Assembly (NCBI GenBank): GCA_019828565.1
Contig: JAHDYR010000067.1
Coordinates: forward strand, 650,244 to 714,243
Direction: 5' to 3'
From: Carpediemonas membranifera BICM
Taxonomy: Eukaryota; Protista; Fornicata
DNA: 64,000 nt
The notes beneath the pieces were generated by a model, which had not been told where the DNA came from, searched no databases, and saw only the letters and a program-made list of their open reading frames with translations. Shown in pieces: positions 36,305-64,000 of this stretch. The translations under genes and the position numbers were made by a program. Each line of letters opens with the position of its first letter. The stretch's first letter is position 1.

Positions 36305-36439
36305 CACTTCAATCAAATATTTATTTGATTGATGATCCGATCCGATCCCCGGGCAGGGTCCCGAATCATCTTTTTGTTTTGCTTGTAAAGCTTCACCCCC
36401 CGTTTCGTCTGCGAAACGAACAGTATTAATACTAGTTTG

Positions 36440-39969: not shown

Positions 39970-42456
39970 AGAAATTTAACGTATCCTGTACACCTGTGTA
40001 AATCAGGGAATTACCAGTTTGCACCACCCCATGTCCCCGGGAACGCCTTAGCGTGTTGACTTCCCTTCGTGAGCGAGCCTGATACTACGTTGGGGGCGTT
40101 AGCACCATCACCGTCAGGGTCCAGCTGGTAAGGCTGGGTAGTCCCTTGCATGTTGACCTATCAACTGGCTGGCCCGATACCCCCAAAGTCGGGATAACCC
40201 AGGTCTTACTCTTGGGGGTCCTTCGGGCCCCCGTTCTGCCTGGCACCCGCAAGGCCTTGCCCTGCACACCCGCCACCGGGGCCTTCTGCTCGGTTTCCCC
40301 TACAGGGCTCCTCTCAGGGATATGTTCTCCATACCATTCGACCCAGTTTGCAATTTTTCAGGCACCCGCCGAAGCGGTTTCGGGCTTGGCGTTTGCCGTA
40401 CCACGCAATTGGGCCAGTTATGAAACCCACCGATCATCGCTGGGTAGCTATATGATTCACGGCTGCGTTCGGGCTCTTCCACACTTTCCGTTCCGGCATG
40501 GATCCCCTCCTCAAGGATTTGTTCCCTATAGGGCTTCTTCCTAGCTTCCGGCTGGTTCCAAGTTTTGGGTGCCGGGCCGTTCGGCGCAGCTCTGATTTGG
40601 TCCAGGTGCCGCCCAGGTGGTATTGTTGCCTTATGGTTACCCTCCTGTTTGGCTGCTGCGCCCCGATACCTCGCACGTACGTGTATACATGTGCATACGT
40701 GCCCCGCCCTATGGCTCTGGGTTATTTCTTATACGTGTGAAGAGTGTGCCGGTTCTGCCGACTGAATGTTGTCTACGTTCCCAGTATGGGTGAGCGTTTG
40801 TGTGTTAGCGAGATTAGTGTTCGGGGTTGAGTCCCCCTTCCGCGGCTGGGTGCTACCGGGATACGTGGGGCTTGCGTCCCCCGCTGATCCCAGGAGCGCT
40901 CCGCTTCGGTTGAGGCGGGGGTTGGATCCCAGTTTGACCCTGGTCCCAGAGGTCATAGGATTCTGGGATGGTGTACTTACCCGTCTTTCCGGAGGTTCAG
41001 AAGGGCACGTCTGCCGTTCTGCAGTCCCTCTCTGACGGTATGGTCCTCGCTGCGGAGGAGCCAGAGCATTTCCAGGATTGCCCTTGAGTTGTACCACTCC
41101 GCCTCCTGCCCTTGCCTTAGGGCGTGGTACTGTGTGCGTAGATGCGCCTCTGCCAGGATGTCATTCCATCCTTCTGGGCGTTCTACCGCCTTGCATTGGC
41201 AGATGATGTGGCTTTGTGTTCCCAGGGGCTGGTTGTATGCCCATTCTGAGAGGATTTTGGTGGTTTCCGCCGCGGTTCTGGTGACAGTGTACAGGCGAGT
41301 AATGGTGTCACCTTCTGAGTCCAGGGTACATAGGGGGCAACACCGCTTGATCCTGCTCAGGAGGGCCTGGGGCTGGCCGATCGCGCTCCCAAGTATGGCT
41401 CTGCTTCTGCCACTGTTGCTGGGGGAGGGGAGTGTGTTGGATGCAGTCATGATTACTCTCTTGACTTCCCGTCTGGTTATCATCTCACCCTTGATCATTC
41501 CTGGTTTCTTGGGTCTCTTCCCTTGCTGCATGCTGAGGATGACTTCCGGGGCTAGTACTGTTGCCACCCCTTTGGCCGTTCGGCTCCCCGGTGTGCAGTA
41601 GTTCTTCTGCTGTGAGGGTCCAGCCTCCCCTCTTTGCTCTTTCCCTGGCGGGCATCTCCTCCTGTGTGCCCTGGAGGACGCTCCGTCGCCATTGGTAGAG
41701 GCGATGTAAGACCGATCCTCTCTCCGCTGTCGCCCAGTCCAGATTCCCTAGGGGGTCGGACGGTCCGGGTCGTGCGCAGACTCATAGAGCCTCACCGCTC
41801 TCTGCCCCATATCTGCCTCCCAGCACATCCATCCCATTAGTACACGGGCGGCTCCTCCTCCCCCTGGTCCTGTGCCTGCCATTAGGCCGCGCCAGTTGTT
41901 CCAGATGGCTCTTCCCCCTGGCGCTTGGCCCCAGATCTCGATCCCGAACTCGATCTTGGGCCAGAGGAAGGTTCTGAGGATGGATTCCGAGGTGGCGGCC
42001 GGGGTGGATCCTTTGGTCCACCCTGCTCTCCTTGCCAGGGCTAGGTATTTCCGGGATTGTGACGTCTTCATTTTGATGCATGCTGCCAACGGATTCTTCC
42101 CGCTGGCTAGCCAGAGTCCCAGATACCTTGCTGAGTCTGACGCCAGTGTGGGAGTTCCTTGGATGCTGACCGCTGCAGTTACGTCGGTACTTATCACCAC
42201 ACTTTTGCCTGGGCTGGTCTGGAGTCCATGGGCTTCAATTACCCTGACCACTGCGTCTGTGCCTTCTTCGGCGAGCTGTGGGGTCTCGGCTGAGATGCTT
42301 GTATCATCTACAAACATTGCAATGAGGCAGTTTTTGGGCCTATCGTCCGTTGGAGGGAGGCAGGGGTCCGGGATCTCTCTATGCCGGAGGTACAGTGCCG
42401 CCTGGCTTAGCCAGTTAGCTGTGAAGAGAATGAACAGAGTGGGGGCCACCACACAT
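39970..42456 (-). mobile_element. 5'-truncated non-LTR retrotransposon (LINE) inserted antisense into the Gypsy integrase
   Basis: 17-bp TSD GGACGCTCGTAGATGAA at 39953-39969 and 42457-42473; RT motifs APTLFILF, MFVDDT, GLQTSPGKS and RYLG; C-terminal CPLC...HIICQC knuckle; about 1-kb 3' UTR. Confidence 0.92.
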
Positions 42457-42985
42457 GGACGCTCGTAGATGAACACGAAGCCGCTTGGAGCGACATGCTC
42501 CCGCAAGTGGCCCTCATACTCAACTCGCGAGTACACCCCGTGACCCATCAGTCCCCGTTGACCCTCCTCTTTGGTCACGACGGCTTCCACAAGGATACTC
42601 AGAGTCGGGAGGAGCGCTACACACGAGCCAGGAACTCTGTCTCCCGCGACCATGCCAAGAAGCTCGGCCGTGTTGCGTCCACGACCTACCGAGCTTATAC
42701 CAGCGGGAGCCTCGTACTGCTGGCCCCCATCAAGCCGATGAAGCTGGCCATGAAGTGGCGCGGCCCGTTCCGCGTCATACAGGAGGGGAAGGTCAAGGGA
42801 TCGGTCATCATTCAGTCCCTCACCGACGACGCCGACCAGTTCACCGTCGCGTCAGAGCGCCTCCGGCCTTTCCACCGCCGCCGAGGCCAGTCACTCGCAG
42901 AACTTCGGGCACTCGTAGCCCGCCAAGACCGTGAGTTCGAGGTCGAGTCCGTCAAGGACCTCGACATGAAGGGTCGCCGTCTCCA
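42457..42985 (+). pseudogene. Gypsy integrase C-terminus and truncated chromodomain
   Basis: Resumes at TLVDEHEAAWSDMLPQV..LNS..H..T..SP..LLFG; GPY/F module KLAMKWRGPFRV; chromodomain start EFEVESVKDL is cut before the conserved W. Confidence 0.88.
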
Positions 42986-42999
42986 TACTGTGAAAGTCG

Positions 43000-43058
43000 G
43001 TAGATAATCTACGATTTTTTCTAGATAATCTAGGGCCTAAAAACCCTAGATTATCTAC
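43000..43058. repeat. Subterminal TAGATAATCTA repeats: 14-bp perfect inverted arms with an 8-bp spacer, plus a third direct copy
   Basis: TAGATAATCTAGGG (43022-43035), CCTAAAAA, CCCTAGATTATCTA (43044-43057); extra copy at 43001-43011. Confidence 0.9.
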
Positions 43059-44924: not shown

Positions 44925-45677
44925 CTATCGTCCACGGACCCACCGCACACAACGCATGACCCTGCTAATACGATCGGTGGCTTTCTCCTTCAGCTTCTGT
45001 CGAAGCAGATCGCACATCGCGGTCTTGACGACGCGTCGAGATAATTCATCCGTGCGCAGGGTACTAACAGGCTCAACCAAGAGCTCTGTCTGAGTAGACG
45101 CCTCCTCTAGGTCTCGCACAGTCTGAGTCTCTGCATGCTCACCCTGTGGCGAAAACTGCTGGCATTTTCCCACCATCCTCGGCTTATCAGGATCAGGACC
45201 CAGCGCAGTCATGTAAACAGGTACCTCAACCCGCTTCTCGACTATCTTGACAGGCTGGGAGCCCCTGCGGGAAGGGGCTTGCGGGTGAACTCGCGTCCTG
45301 GTCGGCCCCCCGTTCGCCTCGTTGTGCAGAGCCTCCATGAAGGCATTGAAGCCGTCATCACGGCCCACCTTCTGCGTCACAAACGACATGACGCATGTGA
45401 CCGACATCTCAAAGGATGCAAAATCGGCAGCACTGGAAACATCGCGATTGTGGCAGATTGAGTTTCGAGCTGCCAACAGCTCGCGTATATGTCTCTTATC
45501 AGCGTGGTGAAGATCAGGAACACGATGTAGGATCGCTTGCAAAAGCATAGCCGGATCCATCTCGCCACCGTCACCACGGTACCTCGCGATGTACTCCTGC
45601 AGCTTCGGAATCATCCTCAGTAGCGCTTCAAACATCATGCTGGCGTATCCTGCTGAATCCTTCGCCCCAGAGCTCAT
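44925..45677 (-). CDS. Swt1-like HEPN domain protein
   Basis: MDPAMLL..I followed by IRELLAARNSICH (Rx4H motif) in a helical context. Confidence 0.6.
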   Translation of the reverse strand: MSSGAKDSAGYASMMFEALLRMIPKLQEYIARYRGDGGEMDPAMLLQAILHRVPDLHHADKRHIRELLAARNSICHNRDVSSAADFASFEMSVTCVMSFVTQKVGRDDGFNAFMEALHNEANGGPTRTRVHPQAPSRRGSQPVKIVEKRVEVPVYMTALGPDPDKPRMVGKCQQFSPQGEHAETQTVRDLEEASTQTELLVEPVSTLRTDELSRRVVKTAMCDLLRQKLKEKATDRISRVMRCVRWVRGR

Positions 45678-45937: not shown

Positions 45938-46593
45938 TTATTTCTTCGTGGATACCTTGTCGAAGAACTGCAATGCCAAGGTCAACTTGCCTTCCTTCGT
46001 CATCTCTTTGTCGGTCAGCAGTGTCTCGAAGTCAGCGACAACGAGAGGCCGGCAAGCAAAGGGGTCAGCCCAATAGTCATCTTCGTAGGCGACCGAGAGG
46101 AACTCAAACGGACGAATGTCAACGCTTGCTTCATATACAATGACAGGCAAGACTGCATCCTCCACACAAACATGGCACAGAAGAGCACTGACATTGTGGT
46201 ACTAAATAATTGGGGGAGAGGCATGTTACAAACAGCAGAGTTGTCGTTCACCGTGTGGACTCCAAGCTTGCCCATCAGTGAAGACGCATCCATAGCGAAC
46301 TTCGTCGTGCCAACGCGAGTGCAGTACGTGGGGTCATCCGGCTGGAAGTCGATCAGTCGGCCGCAGTACAGGCCGATGATGCTCTTCGCAGGGATTTCGG
46401 CACGAGACGCGATGCCCTTGCCAGCGGTGCCTCCATATAGCGTGCGCTGATCAGTCATGTACAGCTGTACGCTCTTGGAGACACCGTTGGCCGCTATCGT
46501 GATGTCCCGGTCCAGGAACGAGCTACCCTCCTGCTTCCAGTCAATATCCTTCAAGTCTGCCGGTATTTTTGTCAAACAGCAGCTCATAGTCAT
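45938..46593 (-). CDS. SET-domain methyltransferase-like protein; 32-nt intron 46202-46233
   Basis: GKGIASRAEIPAKSIIGLYCG, MDAS, spliced VNDNSA|YHN, and ASVDIRPFEFLSVAYEDDYW; GTTTGT...TTTAG joins two ORFs in frame. Confidence 0.8.
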
Positions 46594-46947
46594 GACGAGA
46601 CATGCTAGAACCCTCCGAGGGGATTACGATCGTTTCTTCCGACATCGTTCTCAGAATTCGACCCGTTTATAAATCAATAATAAGCAAGCTAAGCTGCAGC
46701 TCAGGCACCCTCCATGCGCTCGTTCCCTGGCATCTTGGCCCGCGGCCTCTTCAGCGGCGTTTCGGCCCCTCTCGTAAATCGAGAGGTCTTCTTGATGTTG
46801 TTACTGTCTCTGTGCTCCCATTGCTTGCCAGTCTCATTGTAGTGTTAAGTTAGTGCCAAATGGTCTTTATTGCTGTTCGCTCGCATTAATACGGAAGAGA
46901 AAGAATGATGATGTTGATTAGCTTGCGGGGAAAGGCATTACCAAGCA

Positions 46948-49945
46948 TTTGACGCGCACAACCTGCTTAATACTGCATAAACGCATCGCTGATCGCTTTC
47001 TCTTCTGTTCTTCAACGCCCAAGGAGCGGCTTCCAGGTCGGCAACGGTTGCCGACCTGGACCCGTGCAGTTTATGCTTTTTCGGCCAACCGACGAAGTCA
47101 AGCTTGGCCAAGACACATACTGTGTACACGGACCCTGGCAGGCTAGTTACGCCGCTCAGCCTCTGCATCCAGTTGATAATCACTCGCCATTTACTTCTGG
47201 TGCTTTTCCTGCTCTCTCTTCTCCATCACGTCGTCATACTCGGCCCTCGTCAGCCTCACAGTTGTCATCCCGGCATCACGGATGTGCTCAAAGGCCTCAA
47301 CGGGCAGCTTCGGCATCCCGTCCTCGCTGTCGCTGCTGCTGCCCAAGTCTGACTCGCTCTCGTGATAGCGGCGAAGGCGAATGCGTCTGCTGGGCTCCCT
47401 GGTCTTCATAGCGTCATAGAGCGGAGCGAGCCCACTTCCATTGGCCCCGCTACGGACACCCTCATCGGTATCTCTCTCAGACATATCACACTCAACCTGT
47501 TGTGACTGAAGAAATGACAGGTTGTCGACGAGGCTATCCTCGGCATCGCTGTCTGAACTCTCCTCATCCTCCCACTCTCCTTCCAGCATCTCCAACCCGG
47601 CCTCATCGTCAAACTCGCCCTCCACTGCGGTCTCCGGCATCTCTGCCTCGCCAGCTGTCTCGTCAAACAGCGCCTCATCGTCAGACTCACCCTCCCCCGT
47701 GTCGCCCCCCTCGGGATTACGCTGGTCGTGGAGCTGGACCATCCTCATCCTGAGCTTTTTGTAAAGCCACCAGGTCGGCAGAGCTTAAGGTAATCCTGGC
47801 GCCCTCATCCTGGCGCCTCATCCCTGGCGCCGTCATCCCTGGCGTCCTCTCCCTCATAAATCTGAATCATCTTCTTGTCTTGCTCCCGATGTTGTCATTG
47901 CTGTTTTCGTGTCCACAAGCATTCCAGTCTCATTATAATGTTTATTCAGTACCAAATCATCCTTTAGTGACGGGCATTCTCCTCTACATTGCCGAGAAAA
48001 AGAGTTGATGTTGATTAGATGGTGACGAATGCATTACCGGACATTTGACGCGCACAACCTGCTTAATACTGCATAAAAGCATCGCTGATCGCTTTCTCTT
48101 CTGTTCTTCAACGCCCAAGGAGCGGCTTCCAGGTCGGCAACGGTTGCCGACCTGGACCCGTGCAGTTTATGCTTTTTCGGCCAACCGACGAAGTCAAGCT
48201 TAGCCAAGACACATACTGTGTACACGGACCCTGGCAGGCTAGTTACGCCGCTCAGCCTCTGCATCCAGTTGATAATCACTCGCCATTTACTTCTGGTGCT
48301 TTTCCTGCTCTCTCTTCTCCATCACGTCGTCATACTCGGCCCTCGTCAGCCTCACAGTTGTCATCCCGGCATCACGGATGTGCTCAAAGGCCTCAACGGG
48401 CAGCTTCGGCATCCCGTCCTCGCTGTCGCTGCTGCTGCCCAAGTCTGACTCGCTCTCGTGATAGCGGCGAAGGCGAATGCGTCTGCTGGGCACCCTGGTC
48501 TTCATAGCGTCATAGAGCGGAGCGAGCCCACTTCCATTGGCCCCGCTACGGACACCCTCATCGGTATCTCTCTCAGACATATCACACTCAACCTGTTGTG
48601 ACTGAACAAATGACAGGTTGTCGACGAGGCTATCCTCGGCATCGCTGTCTGAACTCTCCTCATCCTCCCACTCTCCTTCCAGCATCTCCAACCCGGCCTC
48701 ATCGTCAAACTCGCCCTCCACTGCGGTCTCCGGCATCTCTGCCTCGCCAGCTGTCTCGTCAAACAGCGCCTCATCGTCAGACTCACCCTCCCCCGTGTCG
48801 ACCCCATCGGGATTACGCTGGTCGTGGAGCTGGACCATCCTCATCCTGAGCTTTTTGTAAAGCCACCAGGTCGGCAGAGCTTAAGGTAATCCTGGCGCCC
48901 TCATCCTGGCGCCTCATCCCTGGCGCCGTCATCCCTGGCGTCCTCTCCCTCATAAATCTGAATCATCTTCTTGTCTTGCTCCCGATGTTGTCATTGCTGT
49001 TTTCGTGTCCACAAGCATTCCAGTCTCATTATAATGTTTATTCAGTACCAAATCATCCTTTAGTGACGGGCATTCTCCTCTGCATTGCCGAGAAAAAGAG
49101 TTGATGTTGATTAGATGGTGACGAATGCATTACCGGACATTTGACGCGCACAACCTGCTTAATACTGCATAAAAGCATCGCTGATCGCTTTCTCTTCTGT
49201 TCTTCAACGCCCAAGGAGCGGCTTCCAGGTCGGCAACCGTTGCCGACCTGGACCCGTGCAGTTTATGCTTTTTCGGCCAACCGACGAAGTCAAGCTTGGC
49301 CAAGACACATACTGTGTACAAGGACCCTGGCAGGCTAGTTACGCCGCTCAGCCTCTGCATCCAGTTGATAATCACTCGCCATTTACTTCTGGTGCTTTTC
49401 CTGCTCTCTCTTCTCCATCACGTCGTCATACTCGGCCCTCGTCAGCCTCACAGTTGTCATCCCGGCATCACGGATGTGCTCAAAGGCCTCAACGGGCAGC
49501 TTCGGCATCCCGTCCTCGCTGTCGCTGCTGCTGCCCAAGTCTGACTCGCTCTCGTGATAGCGGCGAAGGCGAATGCGTCTGCTGGGCTCCCTGGTCTTCA
49601 TAGCGTCATAGAGCGGAGCGAGCCCACTTCCATTGGCCCCGCTACGGACACCCTCATCGGTATCTCTCTCAGACATATCACACTCAACCTGTTGTGACTG
49701 GAAGAAATGACAGGTTGTCGACGAGGCTATCCTCGGCATCGCTGTCTGAACTCTCCTCATCCTCCCACTCTCCTTCCAGCATCTCCAACCCGGCCTCATC
49801 GTCAAACTCGCCCTCCACTGCGGTCTCCGGCATCTCTGCCTCGCCAGCTGTCTCGTCAAACAGCGCCTCATCGTCAGACTCACCCTCCCCCGTGTCGACC
49901 CCCTCGGGCTTACGCTGGTCGTGGAGCTGGACCATCCTAATCCTG
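46948..49945 (-). repeat. Array A: about 2.7 tandem copies of a 1,096-bp unit
   Basis: Near-identical ORFs at 46938, 48034 and 49130 (period 1096). Confidence 0.95.
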
Positions 49946-50745
49946 AGCTTGTTGTAAAGCCAGTCATCGAGCGTCGGCGGCACCAGGTCAGCAGAGCTTC
50001 GGATCTCCGGGTTGAGATCGAGGATCGTTGGGCGCCGCGTGGTCGTTAAGTGACTGGACGCCAACTGGTGCCTGAACTGCTCATCGGTCAGGCTGATGCG
50101 CTTGTCCTTAATGACCTTCTGAGGCTTCTCCCGCGGTCTGCCGCGGCGCTCTAGCGTGCCGATAGACTGCATCCTATCGGTGGACACGTCGATCCGCTGC
50201 GCAAAGCGAAGCATGCGAACCGTCAACCCCTGAACCTTGAGCGCCTCCGATACAGCACTGGCCTGCGGGAATCCCGATTTGAGCGTGCCAAAGCCCATCC
50301 AGCTCGGGCACGAGGTAAGGTCTATCGCATCGGGGAGATTACCTTGGAGATACGAATACTCCCAGCCCGTCTGGTTGAGCAGAATGGCAATGGCGCCATA
50401 CGGGCTGGGGAGACTCTCAACTGATGCAGGCGACACCTCTTCCTCCTCTTTCCAGGACAACGGCTTCGCGGGGTGTGGCAAGTCGAAGTTCCGGAAAGAC
50501 TGAACAGCCGAAACGATCTTCTTCTGCGTCCCCAGAGGCTTCTCAGCGAGGTACCGGCGCAAATGGGTTACCAGCTCGGCACTACGAACAATCGCGATGC
50601 CCTTCTGGATATCTGTGGCGGTTTCCTGACAAATTCTGGCCAAAACGTCTTTCAGAAGCTTGTTGTAGTTCGTACGCGATTTGGTTGGAACATTCTTCAA
50701 CCAACGCTTCATGATATCTTCGTCTATTGCCGCTACAGCCTCCAT
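49383..50745 (-). CDS. Degenerate tyrosine-recombinase-fold protein 2 with acidic tail (1-nt frameshift ~49,700); likely source of the repeat ORF
   Basis: SRTNY, YLAEKPLGTQKKIVSAVQSF (SAM-like), AILLNQTGWEYSYL (box I with Arg lost) and GLTVRMLR; 3' half equals the 185-aa repeat ORF. Confidence 0.5.
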
Positions 50746-51873
50746 GGGATGAGTTTTTGCTGCTTCAGTTTGGATTGCTATTCCAGAATTTCGACCATAC
50801 AAAACTCTAAAGTATTGGGAATTGACCCAAACTGAGCTCAGATACGTGATCTGGGGCCTGAGTGGGTGAATGGGGACCTTTCATTTTTTAAAAGTGTTGT
50901 TACACTCCCAGATTTAATGATAATCTCCGGTGCTGGAAGTAATTCTGAAATGGCGATCCAAATGCAATTATTATTCTGAAAACCGAATCCATGGTGCTGC
51001 CATTCTCTATTCGCTCTAATAGGTACCCAGGCCAGGTTTTGTACACCCTCCCGCTTGCCTCGGAATTCGGACATGCCGAAATTCTGAAATTCGAATACCA
51101 CCGCCCATTTTTGACGTATGAGATCAGTATCCCATGCCAAACCTCAGGACGGCATTCGTGTACCTTTTCCTGCCCTGTATCCATTAGATAACCACCCACT
51201 TTCCTTTCACAATGTGCACTTTATGCTCGCAACGAGATTGAAATGGCGAACTTAAGAATAGAAAGAATACTGGCGGCTTTAACGTAGTAGGCATGTGTAC
51301 AACACTAAGAAACATCAGTATGCGGGCGCAGAGCATCATTAAAGCAACAATAATCCCTAAACAACATCAAGTACCATAAGTCCACCAGGACCATACGATA
51401 TGAACTATAAATGGAGCATAGATCAGTACAGCTGATTTGAAAGTACCAGGCATGGCCAGAATACCGCAATTATCGTCCGTTGATCCACGTGACCTCCATC
51501 TTGGTCGGTATCCAGAGAACCTCCGTCAGACGCTTGCAACGGAACATTTAGGGGGAGCATCCTGAATGGGGCCAGATTTGAGGGACCCTTGGTCTGACAT
51601 GCCATGACCGAGTACTCTAGGGGCCTCCACAGTGCGTCCCGAGGTACGTTATAGCACCACAGACTTGGTGTGTCTTAGCCTGCACCGCCCGAAAGCTCGT
51701 CGGATCACTCCCCATACGTTATATCGCCATTCAGTCCACATAATGGATGTTTTCGGAGCGATTATATCCCCCGTTTGTATGGTATAACGTTTCCGACACC
51801 CCGTTGCCTACGGTTACTGGCAATTTTCTCATCTCTGTTATATGTCCATTATTGGGATATAACGAAGAGAAGA

Positions 51874-53858
51874 ATGACGTTCGAATTCCTTCACGAGTGG
51901 ATCGAGAGCACCTCAGATGATGTGATTGAGGCCGTTATCACCGAATTCAAGGAGAAGAAGACAAACAAGGCGAAGAGTGCCGTTCTTCGGGACAAATTGC
52001 TCGACGAGAACGATATCTTCGATATAGTCGTCAAGAACGGTACGTAATTGGTGCAAATGTTTATATAGGGATCAACTTTAACCACCTGTGCTCATATTTC
52101 GAGATTCAGGGCGAGAAGAAGGCAGAACTCGAGGCATTGCTGTCTCAGCAGGTGCAGGATAAGACCTCGAACGAGAACATCGAGGCAACCTTCACGGAGA
52201 AGGAGATGAAGGCGTTTGAGTCGGCCGCTGTCACAGCCTTCAAGAACTCCAAGAGGGCTGAGTATGCCAAGGAGAATGAGGGCGCGCGTATCGAAAAAGA
52301 GGCGCTGAGTGTCAAGGTTCGGGCGTGGCGCAACGCGACATCCACCAACGCGCTTGTGCGCGACCATGTCACAGCAATGGTTGCCAGGGTGCGCAGCAAG
52401 GAGGCAGACCTTGCTTACATGAAGCACTCCTGCCGCTCGTACTTCGAAGAGTACATCATCGCCCTGGAATGGTTGGAGACCCCCGCGGGAGAAGGTACGC
52501 CCCTGCTCCCCCCAGGTACTGGCGCTATCATCGATTACTATCACAAAATTGTTCGAGGATACAAGAAGAGAGTCAAGCAGTTGAGGAAGAGCTTGACGGC
52601 AAAGAGTGAGGAAGTCATCACGCTGCATCGACGCCTTCTGCAGCAGCAGGCTGAGCGAGAGGCAGCCTATGACGCTGACAAGTCCATGGATGCATCACTC
52701 CCATGCAGCCCCATCCCGCCACAGTCTGGCACAGTCTCCAGGACTTCCTGTCCCCGACGCGATACGGACGAGGCGCAGGCAGCCATGTCTGTGAAGCGCA
52801 AGGCCCTCATCATCACGCCCGAGAAGGCCAGGCCAGAGGACTCGGAGGAGGAGTCAGAGGAGGAAGAGGAGCCAGTGGAGGAGGTCGAGTCAGAGGAGGA
52901 AGAGGAGCCAGTGGAGGAGGTCGAGTCAGAGGAGGAAGAGGAGCCAGTGGCGGATGAGTTGATGGAGGAGCTGCACTTTGGCGACCTCGAGGGCGGCAAC
53001 TCCGGCGACGACGAGGATGTTTGCTCAGCGTCTGCACAAGCAACCGCTCCGAATGACCTGGCAGACCCCATAGACCTCAACTTTACGCCTGAGATGAAGG
53101 ATATCATCGCACAGCACTCTCCGGCCAAGAGTAAGTCAGAGGAGGAGCAGGAGGAAGAGAAGGCCGAGTCAGACGAGGAGGGTGGGGCAGAGGAGGAGGG
53201 TGAAACCGAGGAGAGCGGAAGAGTGGTCAACGCCAGGTCTGACCCAACCCGCTACAACCGAACTGTGGCATTCGACATGATCATCACGACAAGGCTTCCG
53301 AGTTCAGGTTGGCCTACGTATCCGACCCTGGGTTATGGGAACTGCATCATTCACTGCCTGATGATGATGTCGGGTCTGAGAACATTTACTGCGTTCAGAC
53401 GCAAATTGCCCTTGTCGCAGAAGCTCAAGGCTGAGGATGAGGCGACAGCTTACCGCCAGACGCTCCTCGCCCACGCAAGGACCATGGCCGTATTCTCAAA
53501 GATGACAGAGATAGAGCTTCTGGATGAGCTGTTTCCTGAGCACGTCAATAGTGACGGGACAGTGACGAGATGGGCATGCGTTGAAGCAATCAGAGTGTGG
53601 ACTTCGATGACAGGGAAGCCGACCATGCTTGTCAACATTGATGAGAAGATGATCACGCACATTTACCGTAACGAGAAGGGCAATGCATTGACAGTGCGGC
53701 GTCCCTTCGATGGCGATCAGAGTAGAGCGCTGGAGAGTTTTAGGGCGGAGTGCGCCAGGCTCGACATCAACTACGTGATACAGTTGATGGGTCGACATGC
53801 AACTTTGCGGAAGGTCTCAAAGCCGACCCAGGTGAAGATTAGGAGACGTAAGAACTAA
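51874..53858 (+). CDS. OTU-like cysteine protease domain protein with coiled-coil and acidic region; 29-nt intron 52040-52068
   Basis: GTACGT...TATAG joins the upstream exon in frame; motifs PTLGYGNCII, WACVEAIRV and LMGRHA. Confidence 0.65.
52851..52950 (+). repeat. 36-bp coding tandem repeat x2.8 (ESEEEEEPVEEV)
   Basis: GAGTCAGAGGAGGAAGAGGAGCCAGTGGAGGAGGTC repeated. Confidence 0.9.
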
Positions 53859-54041
53859 ATATGACATGAAGTATTCGGTAATTTGATCGGTACTATTAAC
53901 TAGGAGTCTGTTCATAGTCACAAGTGCAACATCACTCACGTCACGTGAATTAGCGAGGATATATTAGTTCACACCAGTGTTTACCCGTCTATGTTGCATT
54001 GTTAACACGTATCATTGAAACTGTGACCAACTTTGGTTGCG

Positions 54042-56555
54042 AGCATAAACTGCACGGGTCCAGGTCGGCAACCGTTGCCGACCTGGAAGCCGCTCCTTGG
54101 GCGTTGAAGAACAGAAGAGAAAGCGATCAGCGATGCTTTTATGCAGTATTAAGCAGGTTGTGCGCGTCAAATGTCCGGTAATGCATTCGTCACCATCTAA
54201 TCAACATCAACTCTTTTTCTCGGCAATGCAGATGAGAATGCCCGTCACTAAAGGATGATTTGGTACTGAATAAACATTATAATGAGACTGGAATGCTTGT
54301 GGACACGAAAACAGCAATGACAACATCGGGAGCAAGACAAGAAGATGATTCAGATTTATGAGGGAGAGGACGCCAGGGATGACGGCGCCAGGGATGAGGC
54401 GCCAGGATGAGGGCGCCAGGATTACCTTAAGCTCTGCCGACCTGGTGGCTTTACAAAAAGCTCAGGATGAGGATGGTCCAGCTCCACGACCAGCGTAATC
54501 CCGATGGGGGTCGACACGGGGGAGGGTGAGTCTGACGATGAGGCGCTGTTTGACGAGACAGCTGGCGAGGCAGAGATGCCGGAGACCGCAGTGGAGGGCG
54601 AGTTTGACGATGAGGCCGGGTTGGAGATGCTGGAAGGAGAGTGGGAGGATGAGGAGAGTTCAGACAGCGATGCCGAGGATAGCCTCGTCGACAACCTGTC
54701 ATTTCTTCAGTCACAACAGGTTGAGTGTGATATGTCTGAGAGAGATACCGATGAGGGTGTCCGTAGCGGGGCCAATGGAAGTGGGCTCGCTCCGCTCTAT
54801 GACTCATGAAGACCAGGGAGCCCAGCAGACGCATTCGCCTTCGCCGCTATCACGAGAGCGAGTCAGACTTGGGCAGCAGCAGCGACAGCGAGGACGGGAT
54901 GCCGAAGCTGCCCGTTGAGGCCTTTGAGCACATCCGTGATGCCGGGATGACAACTGTGAGGCTGACGAGGGCCGAGTATGACGACGTGATGGAGAAGAGA
55001 GAGCAGGAAAAGCACCAGAAGTAAATGGCGAGTGATTATCAACTGGATGCAGAGGCTGAGCGGCGTAACTAGCCTGCCAGGGTCCTTGTACACAGTATGT
55101 GTCTTGGCCAAGCTTGACTTCGTCGGTTGGCCGAAAAAGCATAAACTGCACGGGTCCAGGTCGGCAACCGTTGCCGACCTGGAAGCCGCTCCTTGGGCGT
55201 TGAAGAACAGAAGAGAAAGCGATCAGCGATGCTTTTATGCAGTATTAAGCAGGTTGTGCGCGTCAAATGTCCGGTAATGCATTCGTCACCATCTAATCAA
55301 CATCAACTCTTTTTCTCGGCAATGCAGATGAGAATGCCCGTCACTAAAGGATGATTTGGTACTGAATAAACATTATAATGAGACTGGAATGCTTGTGGAC
55401 ACGAAAACAGCAATGACAACATCGGGAGCAAGACAAGAAGATGATTCAGATTTATGAGGGAGAGGACGCCAGGGATGACGGCGCCAGGGATGAGGCGCCA
55501 GGATGAGGGCGCCAGGATTACCTTAAGCTCTGCCGACCTGGTGGCTTTACAAAAAGCTCAGGATGAGGATGGTCCAGCTCCACGACCAGCGTAATCCCGA
55601 TGGGGGTCGACACGGGGAGGGTGAGTCTGACGATGAGGCGCTGTTTGACGAGACAGCTGGCGAGGCAGAGATGCCGGAGACCGCAGTGGAGGGCGAGTTT
55701 GACGATGAGGCCGGGTTGGAGATGCTGGAAGGAGAGTGGGAGGATGAGGAGAGTTCAGACAGCGATGCCGAGGATAGCCTCGTCGACAACCTGTCATTTC
55801 TTCAGTCACAACAGGTTGAGTGTGATATGTCTGAGAGAGATACCGATGAGGGTGTCCGTAGCGGGGCCAATGGAAGTGGGCTCGCTCCGCTCTATGACTC
55901 AATGAAGACCAGGGAGCCCAGCAGACGCATTCGCCTTCGCCGCTATCACGAGAGCGAGTCAGACTTGGGCAGCAGCAGCGACAGCGAGGACGGGATGCCG
56001 AAGCTGCCCGTTGAGGCCTTTGAGCACATCCGTGATGCCGGGATGACAACTGTGAGGCTGACGAGGGCCGAGTATGACGACGTGATGGAGAAGAGAGAGC
56101 AGGAAAAGCACCAGAAGTAAATGGCGAGTGATTATCAACTGGATGCAGAGGCTGAGCGGCGTAACTAGCCTGCCAGGGTCCTTGTACACAGTATGTGTCT
56201 TGGCCAAGCTTGACTTCGTCGGTTGGCCGAAAAAGCATAAACTGCACGGGTCCAGGTCGGCAACCGTTGCCGACCTGGAAGCCGCTCCTTGGGCGTTGAA
56301 GAACAGAAGAGAAAGCGATCAGCGATGCTTTTATGCAGTATTAAGCAGGTTGTGCGCGTCAAATGTCCGGTAATGCATTCGTCACCATCTAATCAACATC
56401 AACTCTTTTTCTCGGCAATGCAGAGGAGAATGCCCGTCACTAAAGGATGATTTGGTACTGAATAAACATTATAATGAGACTGGAATGCTTGTGGACACGA
56501 AAACAGCAATGACAACATCGGGAGCAAGACAAGAAGATGATTCAGATTTATGAGG
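54042..56555 (+). repeat. Array B: about 2.3 copies of the 1,096-bp unit, inverted relative to array A
   Basis: Same ORFs on the + strand at 55032 and 56128. Confidence 0.95.
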
Positions 56556-56681
56556 ACGCTGAAGAGGCCATGGTGAATCGACCGGGGACCCTGGCCCGCC
56601 ATCTTCCTTCGTAAACAGTACGTCTGGTGCTCCCATGGTTGTTCCCAAGGTTCTTGTTCTTCGCGCATTGCTGGAATCGAC

Positions 56682-57956
56682 ATGGAAAGCAATTACATGC
56701 TTCAGGAGCTTCACTGCCTCACTGGTACGTCCTATCGTATGCGACGGGACAAGTTATCTGAGAAATCGGTCCTCGTTGTCAACCGTTTCAACGATTCCGC
56801 CCGTGGACGTGCCGAGGAGCTCTTTCTCGCCGCTCTTGAGCTTGCTCCAGCCTCTAACGTGTTCGAGGAACGCGATGAGCCCATTGTGCGCAAGGCAGCT
56901 CCGCAACCTGCTGAGAAGCGCGTTCGCTCCGCCGATTGCGCAGAGCAAGTCGATTATCCTGCCAAGCCTTCAGACCGAGCCCTGCGCGCAGCCAGGCGCG
57001 CAGCTGGCGACGCCGCTACATCCCTCGCCGGCCCATCTCCCACCGGTTCTGCTGCCAGACAGCTTTCAGCGGATGACCCGTGCTCTGGCACCCGCTCGGC
57101 TGTCCCTTCCATGTCCCTCGCCGAGTCAGCTTCTTCTGGCTCTGTTGGTAGCTCGTCTGTGGCCATCGCCGACACTGGTGCATCCGCATCCGCCATAACT
57201 CCCACTGCCCGCGCCAAGGCGCCGAAGCGCAAGCTTCCTTTCCTTACCAGTGAGATTGATGTGGAGCAGTTCCTAAGCTCGTGGGCTAGTTCCACCAAGC
57301 TTGAGGCAGCCGGCGCCAGGGAGCTGAAGTTTATATCCAAGTCGGACCTGAAGTCGGTCATTCGGAATGAGAGGGTCCAGAGTGTCGAGCGCATCTGCAA
57401 CATCGCATGGGTGGCATATCAGATGGAGCTCTACAATGAGCTGGAGAATGACGGTGTGGCCATCGACGACTGCATCGTCCCGACCGAGCAGCTGGAGGTA
57501 CTGCAGGCTAGGGTTAGCGAGGCCTTGATGCGACCCACCAGAGAACTTATCGATGGAACTCGGAAGGTGTGGAATTACAGGGCGACGTACGCCGGCATGG
57601 TCAAGTCGATTTGTGACTCCATGGCAACGATGTTGTTCATCGACCCTGGGACCGTCACGCGACACTATATTCTCGTGGTGAGATACATGATTCTCTTCCC
57701 CAATCTCTTCTGGGACCTGCTCTCGAGCCACTGTCTGCCTGACACCATCGCTTACACCAACGTTGTCATGGATGTTGGTCTGAAGAATCTTTTGCTTGAC
57801 ACCCCTGCCGAGGATGACTCGTCCCTCACCACGCTCATCCAGAAGAAGTTTGAGGGCGATGACAGAAGAGTTGTCATTTATAAGGCGATTGGAACAGCTG
57901 ATGAGGAAGTTGTCTCAACTGGGGCAGTTCCTCAGGTCGAAGAGCCTGACGAGTAA
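56682..57956 (+). CDS. Hypothetical protein (element cargo)
   Basis: 424-aa ATG ORF with no recognised domain. Confidence 0.65.
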   Translation: MESNYMLQELHCLTGTSYRMRRDKLSEKSVLVVNRFNDSARGRAEELFLAALELAPASNVFEERDEPIVRKAAPQPAEKRVRSADCAEQVDYPAKPSDRALRAARRAAGDAATSLAGPSPTGSAARQLSADDPCSGTRSAVPSMSLAESASSGSVGSSSVAIADTGASASAITPTARAKAPKRKLPFLTSEIDVEQFLSSWASSTKLEAAGARELKFISKSDLKSVIRNERVQSVERICNIAWVAYQMELYNELENDGVAIDDCIVPTEQLEVLQARVSEALMRPTRELIDGTRKVWNYRATYAGMVKSICDSMATMLFIDPGTVTRHYILVVRYMILFPNLFWDLLSSHCLPDTIAYTNVVMDVGLKNLLLDTPAEDDSSLTTLIQKKFEGDDRRVVIYKAIGTADEEVVSTGAVPQVEEPDE

Positions 57957-57980
57957 ACTATATCCATTGATTTATCAGTG

Positions 57981-58892
57981 TTACTTACCAAACCGAGTAA
58001 AGGAGCTACGGGTAAACTGCTCCAACAGCTTTCGAGCCTGAGGCGAAGGCTGCGGACAATACCAGCTGCGAGTAGTTTTGTTTTCGACCAGATTGTTTTG
58101 TTTGGCGTCTGCAGTCGCCTCGCACGGTTTCTGCCAAGTTCTGGTCACCCACGGCTCCTCCCACTTGGTGAGGTGATATCCGGACTCAAACTTGGAGATA
58201 GAGTCTATGGCATAGTGCATCACAGTGTCAGTGAGCTGAACAGCAGTCACCTCTCCAGTGACGAGATCGGCTGTGCTCGTAAAGTTGGCCCAGTCAATAA
58301 AGTCCTTGAAGACTTCAGGAGAAATCTTGCGAAGGGCATAGTGCTCCCACCAGACCGTGAAAGCAGTAGGATGGCTGACGATTGCGTAAGCCCTCTTGGC
58401 CACACTCGTCGGTGCGATGGTAATGCACGCCTTCCTGACCTTGTCGCTCGGTAGTCTCATGCGCCTCACCTTAGCAGCAATGTCACACCAAACAACCAAG
58501 TCCTGCACGTCTTTGAGCAGTGCGAGGGTGGTGTCGATCGACATTGACGACGGATCACCAGCACCGAAACCTGCGAAGACTGTCGTCTGAATGTCGACTG
58601 CCACAGAGCCCGAGAACGACACAAGAAGGCTGTTCGTTCTCTCCATCATCCACTTACTGCCACACTGAGTGCATAGCCAAGCGGAAAAGAACGAGCTGCG
58701 GACATCGGCCCTGATTTTGGCTGTGTTACCGTTATTCTCGCCCTCGTTAAGCCTACTGATTGTGAATAGCGAGTACTTGTCCATAAAGAGCTCAAAAGCT
58801 TCCTTAAAAGCCGTTGTCTCTTGCTGTTGGGTGCTTGACGTGATAGTGTTCATTTCCATCCGTGCAGAGCCCAGCCGAACGTCTCTAGACAT
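57981..58892 (-). CDS. Hypothetical protein (element cargo)
   Basis: About 300-aa ORF convergent on the previous gene; the upstream extension in the ORF track lies in repeat array C. Confidence 0.55.
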   Translation of the reverse strand: MSRDVRLGSARMEMNTITSSTQQQETTAFKEAFELFMDKYSLFTISRLNEGENNGNTAKIRADVRSSFFSAWLCTQCGSKWMMERTNSLLVSFSGSVAVDIQTTVFAGFGAGDPSSMSIDTTLALLKDVQDLVVWCDIAAKVRRMRLPSDKVRKACITIAPTSVAKRAYAIVSHPTAFTVWWEHYALRKISPEVFKDFIDWANFTSTADLVTGEVTAVQLTDTVMHYAIDSISKFESGYHLTKWEEPWVTRTWQKPCEATADAKQNNLVENKTTRSWYCPQPSPQARKLLEQFTRSSFTRFGK

Positions 58893-58897
58893 AGTCT

Positions 58898-60296
58898 GAG
58901 CAGCGTAACTAGCCTGCCAGGGTCCTTGTACGCAGTATGTGTCTTGGCCAAGCTTGAATTCGTCGGTTGGCCGAAAAAGCATAAACTGCACGGGTCCAGG
59001 TCGGCAACCGTTGCCGACCTGGAAGCCGCTCCTTGGGCGTTGAAGAACAGAAGAGAAAGCGATCAGCGATGCTTTTATGCAGTATTAAGCAGGTTGTGCG
59101 CGTCAAATGTCCGGTAATGCATTCGTCACCATCTAATCAACATCAACTCTTTTTCTCGGCAATGCAGATGAGAATGCCCGTCACTAAAGGATGATTTGGT
59201 ACTGAATAAACATTATAATGAGACTGGAATGCTTGTGGACACGAAAACAGCAATGACAACATCGGGAGCAAGACAAGAAGATGATTCAGATTTATGAGGG
59301 AGAGGACGCCAGGGATGACGGCGCCAGGGATGAGGCGCCAGGATGAGGGCGCCAGGATTACCTTAAGCTCTGCCGACCTGGTGGCTTTACAAAAAGCTCA
59401 GGATGAGGATGGTCCAGCTCCACGACCAGCGTAATCCCGAGGGGGGCGACACGGGGGAGGGTGAGTCTGACGATGAGGCGCTGTTTGACGAGACAGCTGG
59501 CGAGGCAGAGATGCCGGAGACCGCAGTGGAGGGCGAGTTTGACGATGAGGCCGGGTTGGAGATGCTGGAAGGAGAGTGGGAGGATGAGGAGAGTTCAGAC
59601 AGCGATGCCGAGGATAGCCTCGTCGACAACCTGTCATTTCTTCAGTCACAACAGGTTGAGTGTGATATGTCTGAGAGAGATACCGATGAGGGTGTCCGTA
59701 GCGGGGCCAATGGAAGTGGGCTCGCTCCGCTCTATGACGCTATGAAGACCAGGGTGCCCAGCAGACGCATTCGCCTTCGCCGCTATCACGAGAGCGAGTC
59801 AGACTTGGGCAGCAGCAGCGACAGCGAGGACGGGATGCCGAAGCTGCCCGTTGAGGCCTTTGAGCACATCCGTGATGCCGGGATGACAACTGTGAGGCTG
59901 ACGAGGGCCGAGTATGACGACGTGATGGAGAAGAGAGAGCAGGAAAAGCACCAGAAGTAAATGGCGAGTGATTATCAACTGGATGCAGAGGCTGAGCGGC
60001 GTAACTAGCCTGCCAGGGTCCGTGTACACAGTATGTGTCTTGGCTAAGCTTGACTTCGTCGGTTGGCCGAAAAAGCATAAACTGCACGGGTCCAGGTCGG
60101 CAACCGTTGCCGACCTGGAAGCCGCTCCTTGGGCGTTGAAGAACAGAAGAGAAAGCGATCAGCGATGCTTTTTATGCAGTATTAAGCAGGTTGTGCGCGT
60201 CAAATGTCCGGTAATGCATTCGTCACCATCTAATCAACATCAACTCTTTTTCTCGGCAATGCAGAGGAGAATGCCCGTCACTAAAGGATGATTTGG
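58898..60296 (+). repeat. Array C: about 1.3 copies of the 1,096-bp unit
   Basis: 185-aa ORF at 59403-59960; palindromes at 58995 and 60091. Confidence 0.95.
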
Positions 60297-60587
60297 AACT
60301 AACAGGCTTTAATAAGCATGTCAAGCCTGTGATCACGATAACAGCCTTCAATAACTACATCAAGGCAATACATCAAGAAGATTGTTTAAAGAGACGGCGG
60401 GGAGCAAGATGCAGGGGAGAGCGGCAGGGAAACGAAGGCATGGGGACAGGAGCCCGAGAAGAGCGCCTGGAGAACGGTGAGGAAGAACGGCGGGGAAGAG
60501 CAGCCGGGCGCATGGGTACACACATCTGTCATCATGTGGCATCAACATTGCCACAGTGGTCAACTCAATAACAAGCAATGTCTTCAT

Positions 60588-61870
60588 TTACTCACTGTTC
60601 TGGATCACCAATTCGTACGACGAGTAACAGTCGGGACAGAGCCGAATCTTGGGAATCGACTTGCCACAGATGACAATCTTCAGCAGCTCCATCTGTACGC
60701 AGTTGGCAGAGTTACAGAACCAGTGCCCGCACTGCCTACAGTGCACGGCTGAGTCGTTGCGTCGGCATGCGTAACACTTCTTCTCATTGAGGCAATAGCT
60801 ACACGTGTATTTCCAGCGACCTTTAGTGGACTCGGCCCAGTTCTTGTTCTTTCCAGTCTTAGGCCGGGGAGGGACACAGCGTGAGTTGTCGTGGAAGTTC
60901 ACTTTGCATTCCTGGCAAGTCACAAACTTTGACGTCACGCGATTGTCGATCCAGTCCAGACTGTGGCAATGGCCGCAACAGAAACAAAGCAGCCTATTCT
61001 GAATGTCGAGAATCGAGAAAGAATCATCACCGACCTCAGACACATCGTCATCGTTGTCCCCTTGGCTGGCCAGACGTGCCTCCACGGTGGCGAGCCTCTG
61101 ATCGACACTCATCGCGACACGGTGAACATCGTGCAGCACAATCGACTCGCGAGGCGCTTGAGGGGAAGCTGGAGAGGGAACCGAAGTGGGACCGGACGAT
61201 GAGTGCAGGAAAGGCTTCACTTTTCACGCAAAGCTCTTGCTTCACGTGTGTAAGGGCGGGGGTGGCAGGGTTGGGGATTTCAACTGTTCTGCACTTGCCC
61301 ACAAATCTCTCCGGGTCATTGATATCGGGCACACAGAGATTAAAGTCTCGGGAGTCGAGATTATCTGGCACAGGAATATTGAGTCTCGACAGGACGGATC
61401 TGATCGCGCTGGTTAGCTCCGAACGGACTGGGCGAGGAGCTCTTGCAGAGAGCATGGACAACCTTGGGTTTCCCGTCAGATATGGCCACAGTCACCCCCA
61501 TCGTCTCAGCCCAATCTCGGACGTTCTTCGCAACAACCCTTCCCATCGAGACGCCAGGTTTCAACTTCAGCTCATCGAGGAAGTCCGGTGTTTCGGAGCA
61601 CGGCTGAAGAAACGACACGATGATGTGGTTGAACGCATTTCCGAGCTTTTTGATGGACAGGCCAGTTGGGTCTGAGTCAAAGACGTCAAACGCAAACGTG
61701 AAGAAGGCCTTAAGCATGCCCATCATGAGAATTGACCGGCAAGTACTCAAAGCGGTTGTGTTCCACTTCGTCATCGGTCTCGATCTCTTAGAAACAGCCT
61801 TAACTGCATGATCGTCCGCCATGTTCTCATTTACGGCCGCGCGCTTCGTTTCTAGCTCCGTTTCTGTCAT
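60588..61870 (-). CDS. PHD-like double zinc-finger protein (three ORFs joined by two 1-nt homopolymer frameshifts)
   Basis: CFCC...CQEC..NFH...C...YTCSYC followed by CYAC...CRQC..WFC...C...CPDC; overlapping ORFs each shift by one base at GGGAAACCC and AAAA. Confidence 0.65.
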
Positions 61871-62047
61871 TCCAGAGTAGATTTTCTACTAAAAATTGGC
61901 ATTGTTACAACCAATCATTAACATTAATAGAGACTCACCAGCCCGCGGCCAATCGTGACTCAGGTTCGCATCAGACGTCGACAGAGACGAGTTAAACATG
62001 AGGCTGGGCAATTGTCTTCTGAGCTAATCCTTAACCTTTCAAAGAGG

Positions 62048-64000
62048 ATGCTAATACCGAAGTGGACGCTATTACACGGCACTATTTATGCTCCTCAAGA
62101 GGATACTGGCATCAACACCATTCTATGCAGCGTGTACCTTTCCATTGACTCAGATAACGTCAGCACACATCGGTTTCGTGTTTCCAAAGCTCCCCAACGC
62201 CGTGAGTTCGTCCAGGTTGTTCAAGAGTTGCTCAGTGCAGGATATATATGTCGCCAGGATGTTTCAAAGCAGCTGTACCCCTCTCCGACTGCCACATCTA
62301 TCGCTGCGGAGAAGAGGAATCACACGACTTACCCAAGAGCCTACGTGAAGCATACATCCGCAGTTGACACTCTCGCAGCCGAGAATGAGTGTCTACGGAA
62401 GCGTCTGGCCGACACGGAGCGCCTGATTCAACTAACGAACCAGCTCAAGTCCATCACAAACGGATACAATGCCGTTAACGACGAGATCCGCATAATGAAC
62501 TCTCTTGCAGGTAGGCTTAACCTTGATATTGTGCGGATATCTCCTGTTACCTCGAAGATCAAGTCTCTCGCGTGTAATATCCAGAATATGGAGGAGATAG
62601 AATCACTTCTCCAATCTGACACCGCTTGGAGGAGATTTATCCGCAGTCACGTTCCCGCCAACATTCAGCACAGGGTAACGGCGAGAAGGTCTGATCAGGC
62701 CAATCAGGAATATGAGCTCGACCTCATCACCCATGTCGAAGCTCCTCTTGATGTTGTACGATCATCTATTCAGGGCGACTCGGCCCATGCAGAGCACGTT
62801 GCAGGAAAGATCGTCGTCTTCTATGACTCAGAGCAGGACCGTGAGACTCACTATAGCATCATGAAAGAGCAAGGCCTCACCCCTCGGATGCAGACGAGTG
62901 CAAGATATACCCATGTATATCATGCATCATTTGATATCATGGAGTATTATCGCCAAGCGGTTGCATTCCCCGTATCGCTGGAGACGTCACGATCCGGGCG
63001 CAAGAGTGCAGCTCGGACATTAAGACGACAGAGTCATTCCGCTGAGACGGGGACGATCCCACTCGTGTTAGAGGTGTGGGTCGATGCGTGGAGAGGGCTG
63101 ACAACCGCTGTTAAGATTCGTTTCCTCGACGACTCCCACAAAGTCTTTCCGTCTGGTGCGACTCCTCCTTTCCGGATTCTTGAATACAACGGCCCAGAAA
63201 GTCTCATCACTGAGCATTTTGCCTTCATTGAACAGTCCATCGAGAGCACACACCGCGAGGTGCTGGAAGTCAGGAACACGGGTCTCCTCTGCCGAGTAAC
63301 GCGTGTCTTTATTATCGCTGACCATCCAGCCATGTCCAAGGTTTGCGGGGCACTCATTGGAGGCAATTACCCCTCGCCATTCAGTCCCGTTCATTCGAAG
63401 AACAAGGGCTGGAGTCCCTTTGGTCGCACCCCGCGCTGCACCTTGGCAGATATCCTGCTGGCGAAGCATAAGTCACAGTTCGACACTATTATGGACAGAG
63501 AGGCCAAATGGGGATCCTTCTATAACCATCAGAAGAAGTGCATCGCTCCCACTTTGTTTGAGACGTCGACTGCGTCGCTGCCCAGAGACTGCGTCTTCTT
63601 ATTCCCTCCAATCATGCATGTCAGTCATGACTTTGTGTCGTTGATTCATGCCATGTGCCGCATGTTCAAGCCAGAGCCAATTGACCCAGAGAGCGACCCT
63701 CGTCAAATTAAGGAGGTGAAGGCAAGGAACGCGATGCTAGCGAATCTGGCGTCGTTTGAGCCACCCAGCCGTACGACGGGCTGCAACGAGCAAGTCAAGG
63801 GGAGAAAGATGATAGCATCGATTGGACTTAAGCTGCATCGTGCGTTCCCGCCACCCGTGCAGTCATTATTCATACTCGCTGCATATCTCCAGGAGCACTA
63901 CTATTCCCACGAGGATGTAACTGAGAACATGGTCGTGTGGCATCGCTTGACAGCACTTCTCGTGCACCTCTTCTCTGTGACCATGTGTCTTAGCACATCT
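62048..64000 (+). CDS. RAG1/Transib/CMC-like DDE transposase candidate, partial (651 codons, runs off the window)
   Basis: Hand-translated stop-free ORF from ATG 62048; motifs LEVWVDAW, PFRILEYNGPES, FIIADHPAMSKVCG..GGNYP, PPIMH and VKGRKM occur in the expected order. Confidence 0.6.
   Translation, partial: MLIPKWTLLHGTIYAPQEDTGINTILCSVYLSIDSDNVSTHRFRVSKAPQRREFVQVVQELLSAGYICRQDVSKQLYPSPTATSIAAEKRNHTTYPRAYVKHTSAVDTLAAENECLRKRLADTERLIQLTNQLKSITNGYNAVNDEIRIMNSLAGRLNLDIVRISPVTSKIKSLACNIQNMEEIESLLQSDTAWRRFIRSHVPANIQHRVTARRSDQANQEYELDLITHVEAPLDVVRSSIQGDSAHAEHVAGKIVVFYDSEQDRETHYSIMKEQGLTPRMQTSARYTHVYHASFDIMEYYRQAVAFPVSLETSRSGRKSAARTLRRQSHSAETGTIPLVLEVWVDAWRGLTTAVKIRFLDDSHKVFPSGATPPFRILEYNGPESLITEHFAFIEQSIESTHREVLEVRNTGLLCRVTRVFIIADHPAMSKVCGALIGGNYPSPFSPVHSKNKGWSPFGRTPRCTLADILLAKHKSQFDTIMDREAKWGSFYNHQKKCIAPTLFETSTASLPRDCVFLFPPIMHVSHDFVSLIHAMCRMFKPEPIDPESDPRQIKEVKARNAMLANLASFEPPSRTTGCNEQVKGRKMIASIGLKLHRAFPPPVQSLFILAAYLQEHYYSHEDVTENMVVWHRLTALLVHLFSVTMCLSTS

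Follow-up and report, generated by a model that had tools for sequence, protein, structure and literature searches.

The CMCT transposons (CACTA, Mirage, Chapaev, Transib, Plavaka and ESTA, together with RAG1) have 5'-CA..TG-3' termini and target site duplications (TSDs) of 2-5 bp, and two zinc motifs are reported for all of their lineages as well as for RAG1, namely C(2)C between the second Asp and the Glu of the DDE triad and H(3-4)H before that Glu (PMC12730594). TSD length is labile within Transib, where it is usually 5 bp and varies down to 2-3 bp (10.64898/2026.08.26.747230), and PlavakaB combines CATCA ends with TSDs of 2-3 bp (PMC12730594). The mechanism of RAG1, BbRAG1L and HzTransib has been described (PMC10462144), and structural matches to RAG1 are reported for Arabidopsis CACTA TnpD (10.1101/2024.04.02.587720) and for a fungal ESTA transposase (PMC12730594). 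Here an open reading frame (ORF) of the protist Carpediemonas membranifera is compared with these systems; no literature linking Carpediemonas with RAG1 was found. Very probably, the product of this ORF is the DDE transposase of a lineage of large, CMCT-related cut-and-paste DNA transposons in Carpediemonas-type protists.

The stretch of DNA analyzed (the window) comprises 64,000 nucleotides, of which positions 52048-64000 match C. membranifera contig JAHDYR010000067.1 (locus L004) with zero mismatches; outside the element described below it carries ordinary eukaryotic genes (STAG, RhoGEF, ankyrin kinase and RhoGAP). On the plus strand, 62048-64000 consists of 651 codons free of stops; the nearest in-frame stop on the 5' side is at 61928, and 690 open codons would be expected by chance with a probability of about 6e-14. 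An earlier, sequence-only reading had explained the absence of this ORF from the ORF track by the want of a stop within the window, and the frame does run past the window end: the full gene (P0005) is intact, consists of a single exon and encodes 840 aa, the first 651 of which lie in the window (62048-64000, plus strand, continuing to extended position 64570; L004 10001-12523). The same reading had listed five motifs in the order of the RAG1/Transib core, and all five are found in that order--VWVDAW at residue 343, PFRILEYNGPES at 374, IIADHPAMSKVCG at 422, NYPSPFS at 440 and PPIMH at 520. The motifs go beyond chance resemblance, because D346, D425, H524 and E705 are conserved in 20 homologs at 21-61% identity. 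A 99% identical copy at locus L001 has a one-base insertion near codon 792, where the window copy is intact. Substitutions between P0005 and the family member P0002 number 90, 68 and 244 at first, second and third codon positions, so that third positions dominate.

A search with residues 280-651 returned C. membranifera hypothetical proteins, and when 1.84 billion representatives were scanned exhaustively with HMMER, only 17 relatives emerged, those with a source name all being C. membranifera hypothetical proteins as well. The family is drawn from C. membranifera (where several subfamilies are 23-60% identical), from a second NCBI assembly (GCA_002919055.1) and from a few environmental contigs. 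A divergent lineage in a deep-branching eukaryote had been proposed from the sequence, and the host, C. membranifera, is indeed such a eukaryote. In a tree of the cores, sequences of different sources are interspersed, and such intermixing fits several old subfamilies. Residue counts given below refer to a 20-sequence alignment (21-61% identity) that includes some near-duplicates and hence overstates independence; also conserved in it are C579, E581, P686 and E701/E702/E705. Neither single proteins nor profiles, when searched against Pfam, NCBIfam and PDB sequences, gave a transposase match or detectable similarity to the RAG1 core; specifically, none of the 20 members matched Pfam RAG1, and none matched the Pfam CACTA or Plavaka models up to E 1. 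Profile searches of a 5.8-billion-sequence set returned only known paralogs among the matches listed; 27 motif matches in metagenome contigs included no homolog, and viral contigs no confirmed family member. A viral origin is ruled out by the eukaryotic host genes and by the anatomy of the element's ends and TSD. Separately, three metagenomic proteins of 380-400 aa (P0032, at L008 244-1386, P0024 and P0025) match the family in its RNase H half alone (102 columns, hhalign probability 97.6) and seem to stop before the Glu helix; they lie on a contig that carries a UvrD-like helicase and inverted terminal-like repeats.

An AlphaFold2 model of the 840-aa protein, built on the family alignment (pLDDT 83, pTM 0.75), has strands at residues 336-348, 352-360 and 375-381, a helix at 384-403 and a strand at 414-424, which is the RNase H order. 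In this model D346 belongs to strand 1 and D425 sits where strand 4 ends; a long helical insertion and then a helix bearing E705 follow. The window transposase is predicted, in other words, to combine an RNase H core and a helical insertion like that of RAG1; the lack of an RNase H fold had been named beforehand as a point on which the original proposal could fail. With the 840-aa model as Foldseek query, ranks 1-42 are RAG1 chains (E from 1e-8) and ranks 43-45 are HzTransib, followed by the P element at E 0.01; with the core model alone, RAG1 is again the best match (TM about 0.5, E 5e-8), TMq to RAG1 and BbRAG1L being 0.45-0.55 at 9-13% identity. The E-values for HzTransib are 6e-4 to 6e-5. 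The alignments have an rmsd of 8-10 Å, and the full-length ones span 500-790 columns. Against BFVD nothing was found at E below 0.001. That RAG1 is the top match does not place the protein in RAG1/Transib, since CACTA TnpD and ESTA also match RAG1. The Foldseek matches include no CACTA, Chapaev, Mirage or Plavaka structure; to our knowledge none has been solved, and within the wider group structures exist for RAG1 and Transib alone.

From conservation and position, the catalytic triad is inferred to consist of D346 (63083-63085, plus strand; WxD motif in strand 1; conserved in 19/20), D425 (63320-63322, plus strand; 19/20) and E705 (extended 64160-64162, plus strand, past the window end; 18/20). 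The two Asp residues are those that the sequence-only reading had singled out, in VWVDAW and in IIADHPAMSKVCG, as first and second catalytic residues. It had also proposed locating a catalytic Glu and a His pair beyond position 64,000; the Glu is there, and the His pair is not (its second His occurs in 0/20). H524, the His of PPxMH (63617-63619, plus strand), is invariant (20/20) and probably corresponds to the DxxH/CxxH His of transposases that form hairpins. The alignment further defines a family signature, RTTGCNE (63770-63790, plus strand), with C579 and E581 invariant.

At the position of C(2)C, the window protein has the degenerate S443-P-F-S446 (63374-63385, plus strand). Column counts in the 20-sequence alignment show Cys at 443 in eight members, at 446 in two and at both in none, so that ten keep one; the first His column (679) holds His in 12 members and Leu in the window protein, and the second His of H(3-4)H is found in 0/20 homologs. 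None of the 20, therefore, has a complete C(2)C, and in none does the RAG1/CMCT zinc site retain its second His. The window protein has zero ligands in the four zinc columns, although a His stands two residues ahead of column 679. Because remnant Cys and His residues persist in some members, the alignment suggests a zinc-binding ancestor that lost the site rather than a misalignment. The Cys-to-Ser interpretation originally given to NYPSPFS is thereby upheld, as the S443 and S446 columns hold a single Cys in other members; the accompanying idea of a zinc-free lineage is right for the ZnB/C2H2 site and too strong for the whole protein, because 16-17 of the 17 full-length members conserve a C-terminal H766-x-C768...C836-x-C838 arrangement and H524 and C579 are invariant too. 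This arrangement is likely a separate zinc site, and the window transposase is probably not zinc-free overall.

Sequence common to L004 and the 99% identical copy at L001 stops at L004 13670, and since the reverse complement of this end matches window 42984-43057, the two define an element of 22,734 bp that extends from 42,984 to extended position 65,717. Its left terminal inverted repeat (TIR; 42984-43057, plus strand, 74 bp) begins CATACTGTG, as does its right TIR (extended 65644-65717, that is, L004 13597-13670), to which it is identical at 73/74 positions; each TIR holds three inverted subterminal YAGAT(A/T)ATCT boxes. The element splits the chromodomain of a Ty3/gypsy LTR retrotransposon into two halves. 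The 5' part of the latter (36293-42983, plus strand) comprises an LTR (36293-36422), protease-RT-RNase H-integrase and the start of the chromodomain; downstream are the other chromodomain piece (Chromo match, E 9e-4) and the 3' LTR (L004 14179-14308), and the two LTRs are 98% identical. Of the duplication lengths 0-6 tried, only 2 bp gives the same sequence on either side while also restoring the chromodomain frame, so that the TSD is TC (42982-42983, plus strand; other copy L004 13671-13672). Between the integrase and chromodomain ORFs of this gypsy element lies a pyrimidine-skewed stretch of about 2.4 kb (40059-42495), possibly another insertion.

A relative in the second assembly, P0014 (L005), belongs to an element with the same anatomy: 11,629 bp, TIRs of about 70 bp starting from CATACTG, and a 2-bp TSD (GC), removal of which repairs an RT-RNase H frame. 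Its flanks minus 2 bp are collinear with, and abut exactly on, an uninterrupted homolog. The TSD is thus known from only two complete, independent elements, both of which are inserted in retrotransposons. All 14 termini, from several subfamilies, begin CATACTG. Ends of identical sequence are found next to three or four different flanks, and this difference in flanks indicates a recent spread of the element.

Several arrangements of ends were also observed that depart from this simple anatomy. At L004 21792-22523, 8 kb past the right end of the window element, there is a second right end of the family in inverted orientation. At four loci, sequence abutting a CATACTG end is directly repeated several kb away (67-522 bp: L002 3849-4010 and 7312-7473; L003 7055-7224 and 21042-21211; L009 14383-14449 and 18359-18424; L010 13184-13702 and 17585-18106), and in L009 two ends of the same type point outward around the repeated segment. 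Such repeats could reflect aberrant transposition, recombination repair in a host lacking non-homologous end joining (NHEJ), or an assembly artefact. A 436-bp stretch at L009 13405-13840 lies between two different CATACTGTC ends that lack a matching 2-bp duplication; it may be a non-autonomous derivative that has undergone rearrangement. Beyond the 3' end of the window element are a Dam-like methyltransferase gene (L004 16183-17399) and an RT gene (19160-21075); Carpediemonadida DAM proteins have been reported (10.64898/2026.05.21.726589).

A partner gene, ORF2 (60588-61870, minus strand), starts 178 bp upstream of the transposase gene and is divergent from it. In the window it is spread over three frames; an intact ORF of 411 aa lies beside P0002 (L002). 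The broken ORF2 and SET-like gene of the window were searched in pieces, and the intact L002 paralog was used in place of a joined version. Further homologs occur beside P0003 and P0012, inside the L005 TIRs, and in L006 and L010, and 16 Cys/His residues are invariant over six loci. The protein has an N-terminal domain of unknown fold followed by PHD-like and FYVE-like fingers; profile matches to PHD fingers and to a FYVE finger are weak (best E 3e-4). No kelch signal was found in the scanned element ORFs or in the ORF2 homologs, which rules out ORF2 as RAG2.

Within the element is also a SET-like cargo ORF, apparently frameshifted or spliced (46015-46593, minus strand), which is 28% identical (E 3e-6) to a SET protein beside P0017 and which alone gave no Pfam match. 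SET-like genes also lie beside P0017 (two copies) and near P0002, and GNAT acetyltransferase genes near P0012 and P0017; location inside TIRs is shown for the window SET-like gene only. Other cargo ORFs encode 250 aa (44925-45677, minus strand; a weak HEPN-like match at E 0.006, below the cut-off, and a homolog near P0003), 372 aa (49684-50802, minus strand; no family, homologs in L001, L002 and L009) and 573 aa (52137-53858, plus strand; no family, homologs of the C-terminal part in L003 and L010). A unit of about 1096 bp coding for an acidic 185-aa ORF forms three arrays: A (46828-49962, minus strand), B (54042-56555, plus strand), which is inverted relative to A, and C (58890-60383, plus strand), oriented as B. 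The interior of the element is rearranged between copies. Three further repeats or genes were seen alongside. The 1096-bp unit of the window contains a short stretch of a 14-bp minisatellite (47795-47854 and its copies), which is expanded to about 1 kb near P0003 (L003 16600-17620). A gene of about 330 aa and no known family (L005 8643-9647, L006 7977-8957, L017 2172-3152, L002 508-1512; 25-34% identity) lies in or near family elements of both assemblies and has no homolog in the window element. A single-ORF repeat of about 1.4-1.8 kb is dispersed in five copies over the window (1255-2931, 10102-11911, 16902-18410, 24986-26362 and 30392-32236); the copies are 90-98% identical and encode about 540 aa with a weak RCC1-like match, and a homolog lies directly upstream of P0018 (L009).

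The predicted RNase H fold with conserved D, D and E, and the TIRs and TSD around the gene, are those of a cut-and-paste DDE transposon; 5'-CA..TG-3' ends (14 termini) and a 2-bp TSD (two elements) are shared with CMCT. Because both the C(2)C and the H(3-4)H motif are missing, the element is described as CMCT-related only, apparently an undescribed lineage of cut-and-paste transposons, and is not filed in a clade or named superfamily. The affinity to the RAG1/Transib core originally proposed survives as a RAG1-like topology, and not as a specific branch. That the protein belongs to Transib/RAG1L proper, as a far-diverged member placed specifically on the RAG1 branch of the CMCT tree, is decidedly unlikely. 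Like RAG1/RAG1L (ProtoRAG, AanRAGL), the Carpediemonas protein has an RNase H core with a helical insertion, the DDE order, CA..TG ends and a partner gene with a PHD-like finger; RAG1 outscores HzTransib in both fold searches, over the long alignments noted above, and CATACTG agrees with the RSS heptamer except at 2 positions. With Transib (HzTransib) it shares the fold family, an EExxE-type third motif and a single-exon transposase gene. In several members the conserved Pro is preceded by YFH or YYH, as in RAG1. Its D2-E spacing of 280 is nearer that of RAG1 (253) than the shorter one of insect Transib (206-214; PMC1131882). Against such a placement, the fold searches held no other CMCT superfamily as a structural competitor, while TnpD and ESTA match RAG1 too, and no member matches Pfam RAG1. 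The SxxCxxC motif of Transib, the CCGHC tail and ZnB ligands of RAG1, and a kelch/RAG2 gene are all absent; the RAG1/RAG1L partner has kelch and is convergent or tandem, whereas ORF2 is divergent. RAG1/RAG1L have a 5-bp TSD and a bipartite, RSS-like TIR, whereas both complete Carpediemonas elements have a 2-bp TSD and symmetric TIRs with no heptamer-spacer-nonamer (the best nonamer-like word is at position 54 and both TIRs are alike), and Transib elements are 3-4 kb long as against multi-gene elements of 11-23 kb here. The TSD argument is not decisive with respect to Transib, because TSD length is labile there.

The 2-bp TSD, symmetric TIRs, FER motif and size of 11-23 kb look more like CACTA/Plavaka, and a divergent family inside a named group with 2-bp TSDs (EnSpm/CACTA, Plavaka or Mirage) is conceivable, if doubtful. 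EnSpm/CACTA likewise have a short, CA-initiated TIR, and TnpD too resembles RAG structurally; further traits reminiscent of CACTA are the subterminal repeats, the large size, the second gene, the captured cargo and motifs of the D-x-P-A...G...CP and FER type. Plavaka, ESTA and Mirage share the 2-bp TSD, PlavakaB having 2-3 bp together with CATCA termini; Plavaka and ESTA also carry epigenetic-enzyme cargo (TET/JBP there; PHD/FYVE-, SET- and GNAT-like here). Yet the Pfam CACTA and Plavaka models fail for all 20 members, the HMMER relatives with names are confined to C. membranifera, and the zinc motifs, kept in Plavaka, ESTA and Mirage, are lost. EnSpm/CACTA have CAC(TA/TG) ends and a 3-bp TSD, as against CATAC and 2 bp; Plavaka has TGT or CATCA termini; and the ESTA TSD is TA, as against TC and GC. 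It is highly improbable that the gene is merely a domesticated or dead transposase amid repeats that are incidental or assembly artefacts: P0001, P0006-P0009 and P0011 are truncated or frameshifted, the window ORF2 is broken and the interior is rearranged between copies, but both TIRs are intact, the TSD is clean and lies in a retrotransposon with 98% identical LTRs, 99% identical copies are found elsewhere, and no conserved residue is missing from the window copy. The reading as the transposase of a CMCT-related lineage has its own points against it, namely the lack of a sequence-level transposase match, the 9-13% Foldseek identity, the missing zinc motifs, the broken window ORF2 and SET-like gene, and a TSD seen in two elements. 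A bolder version, in which the family would be a separate lineage of superfamily rank (sister to Transib+RAG1 or basal to CMCT), resident in metamonads since early eukaryotes, making RAG-type hairpins without ZnB zinc or NHEJ, and with its PHD partner an independent RAG2-like mark reader backed by SET and GNAT proteins, is rather unlikely as a whole.

If the ORF is the transposase of this lineage, then by inference from RAG1, BbRAG1L and HzTransib a dimer would synapse the two ends; by analogy with RAG1 and Transib the flank would be nicked and hairpinned on excision; and strand transfer with a 2-nt stagger would follow at insertion. The helical insertion would have to stay together without the usual zinc. 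Most speculatively, and as the weakest step, ORF2 and the SET and GNAT cargo might read and write histone marks, so that the element stays active or its insertion is steered. Because metamonads, including this host, are without NHEJ, lacking Ku and DNA-PKcs (PMC8516963), the repair of donor breaks would fall to alternative end joining or homologous recombination.

A host without Ku and DNA-PKcs raises the question of how hairpin-ended donors are repaired without NHEJ, and a transposase that keeps its fold, triad and recent mobility without the full ligand set may serve as a natural test of the role of that zinc. The PHD-, SET- and GNAT-like genes parallel the capture of TET/JBP by fungal CMCT elements; the element is no evidence of a RAG1-RAG2 precursor in protists. 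The window transposase is, as modeled, a distant structural relative, in a free-living protist, of the RAG1 of vertebrate immunity; it would extend RAG1-fold transposons to Metamonada, and this bears on whether they originated in the earliest eukaryotes.
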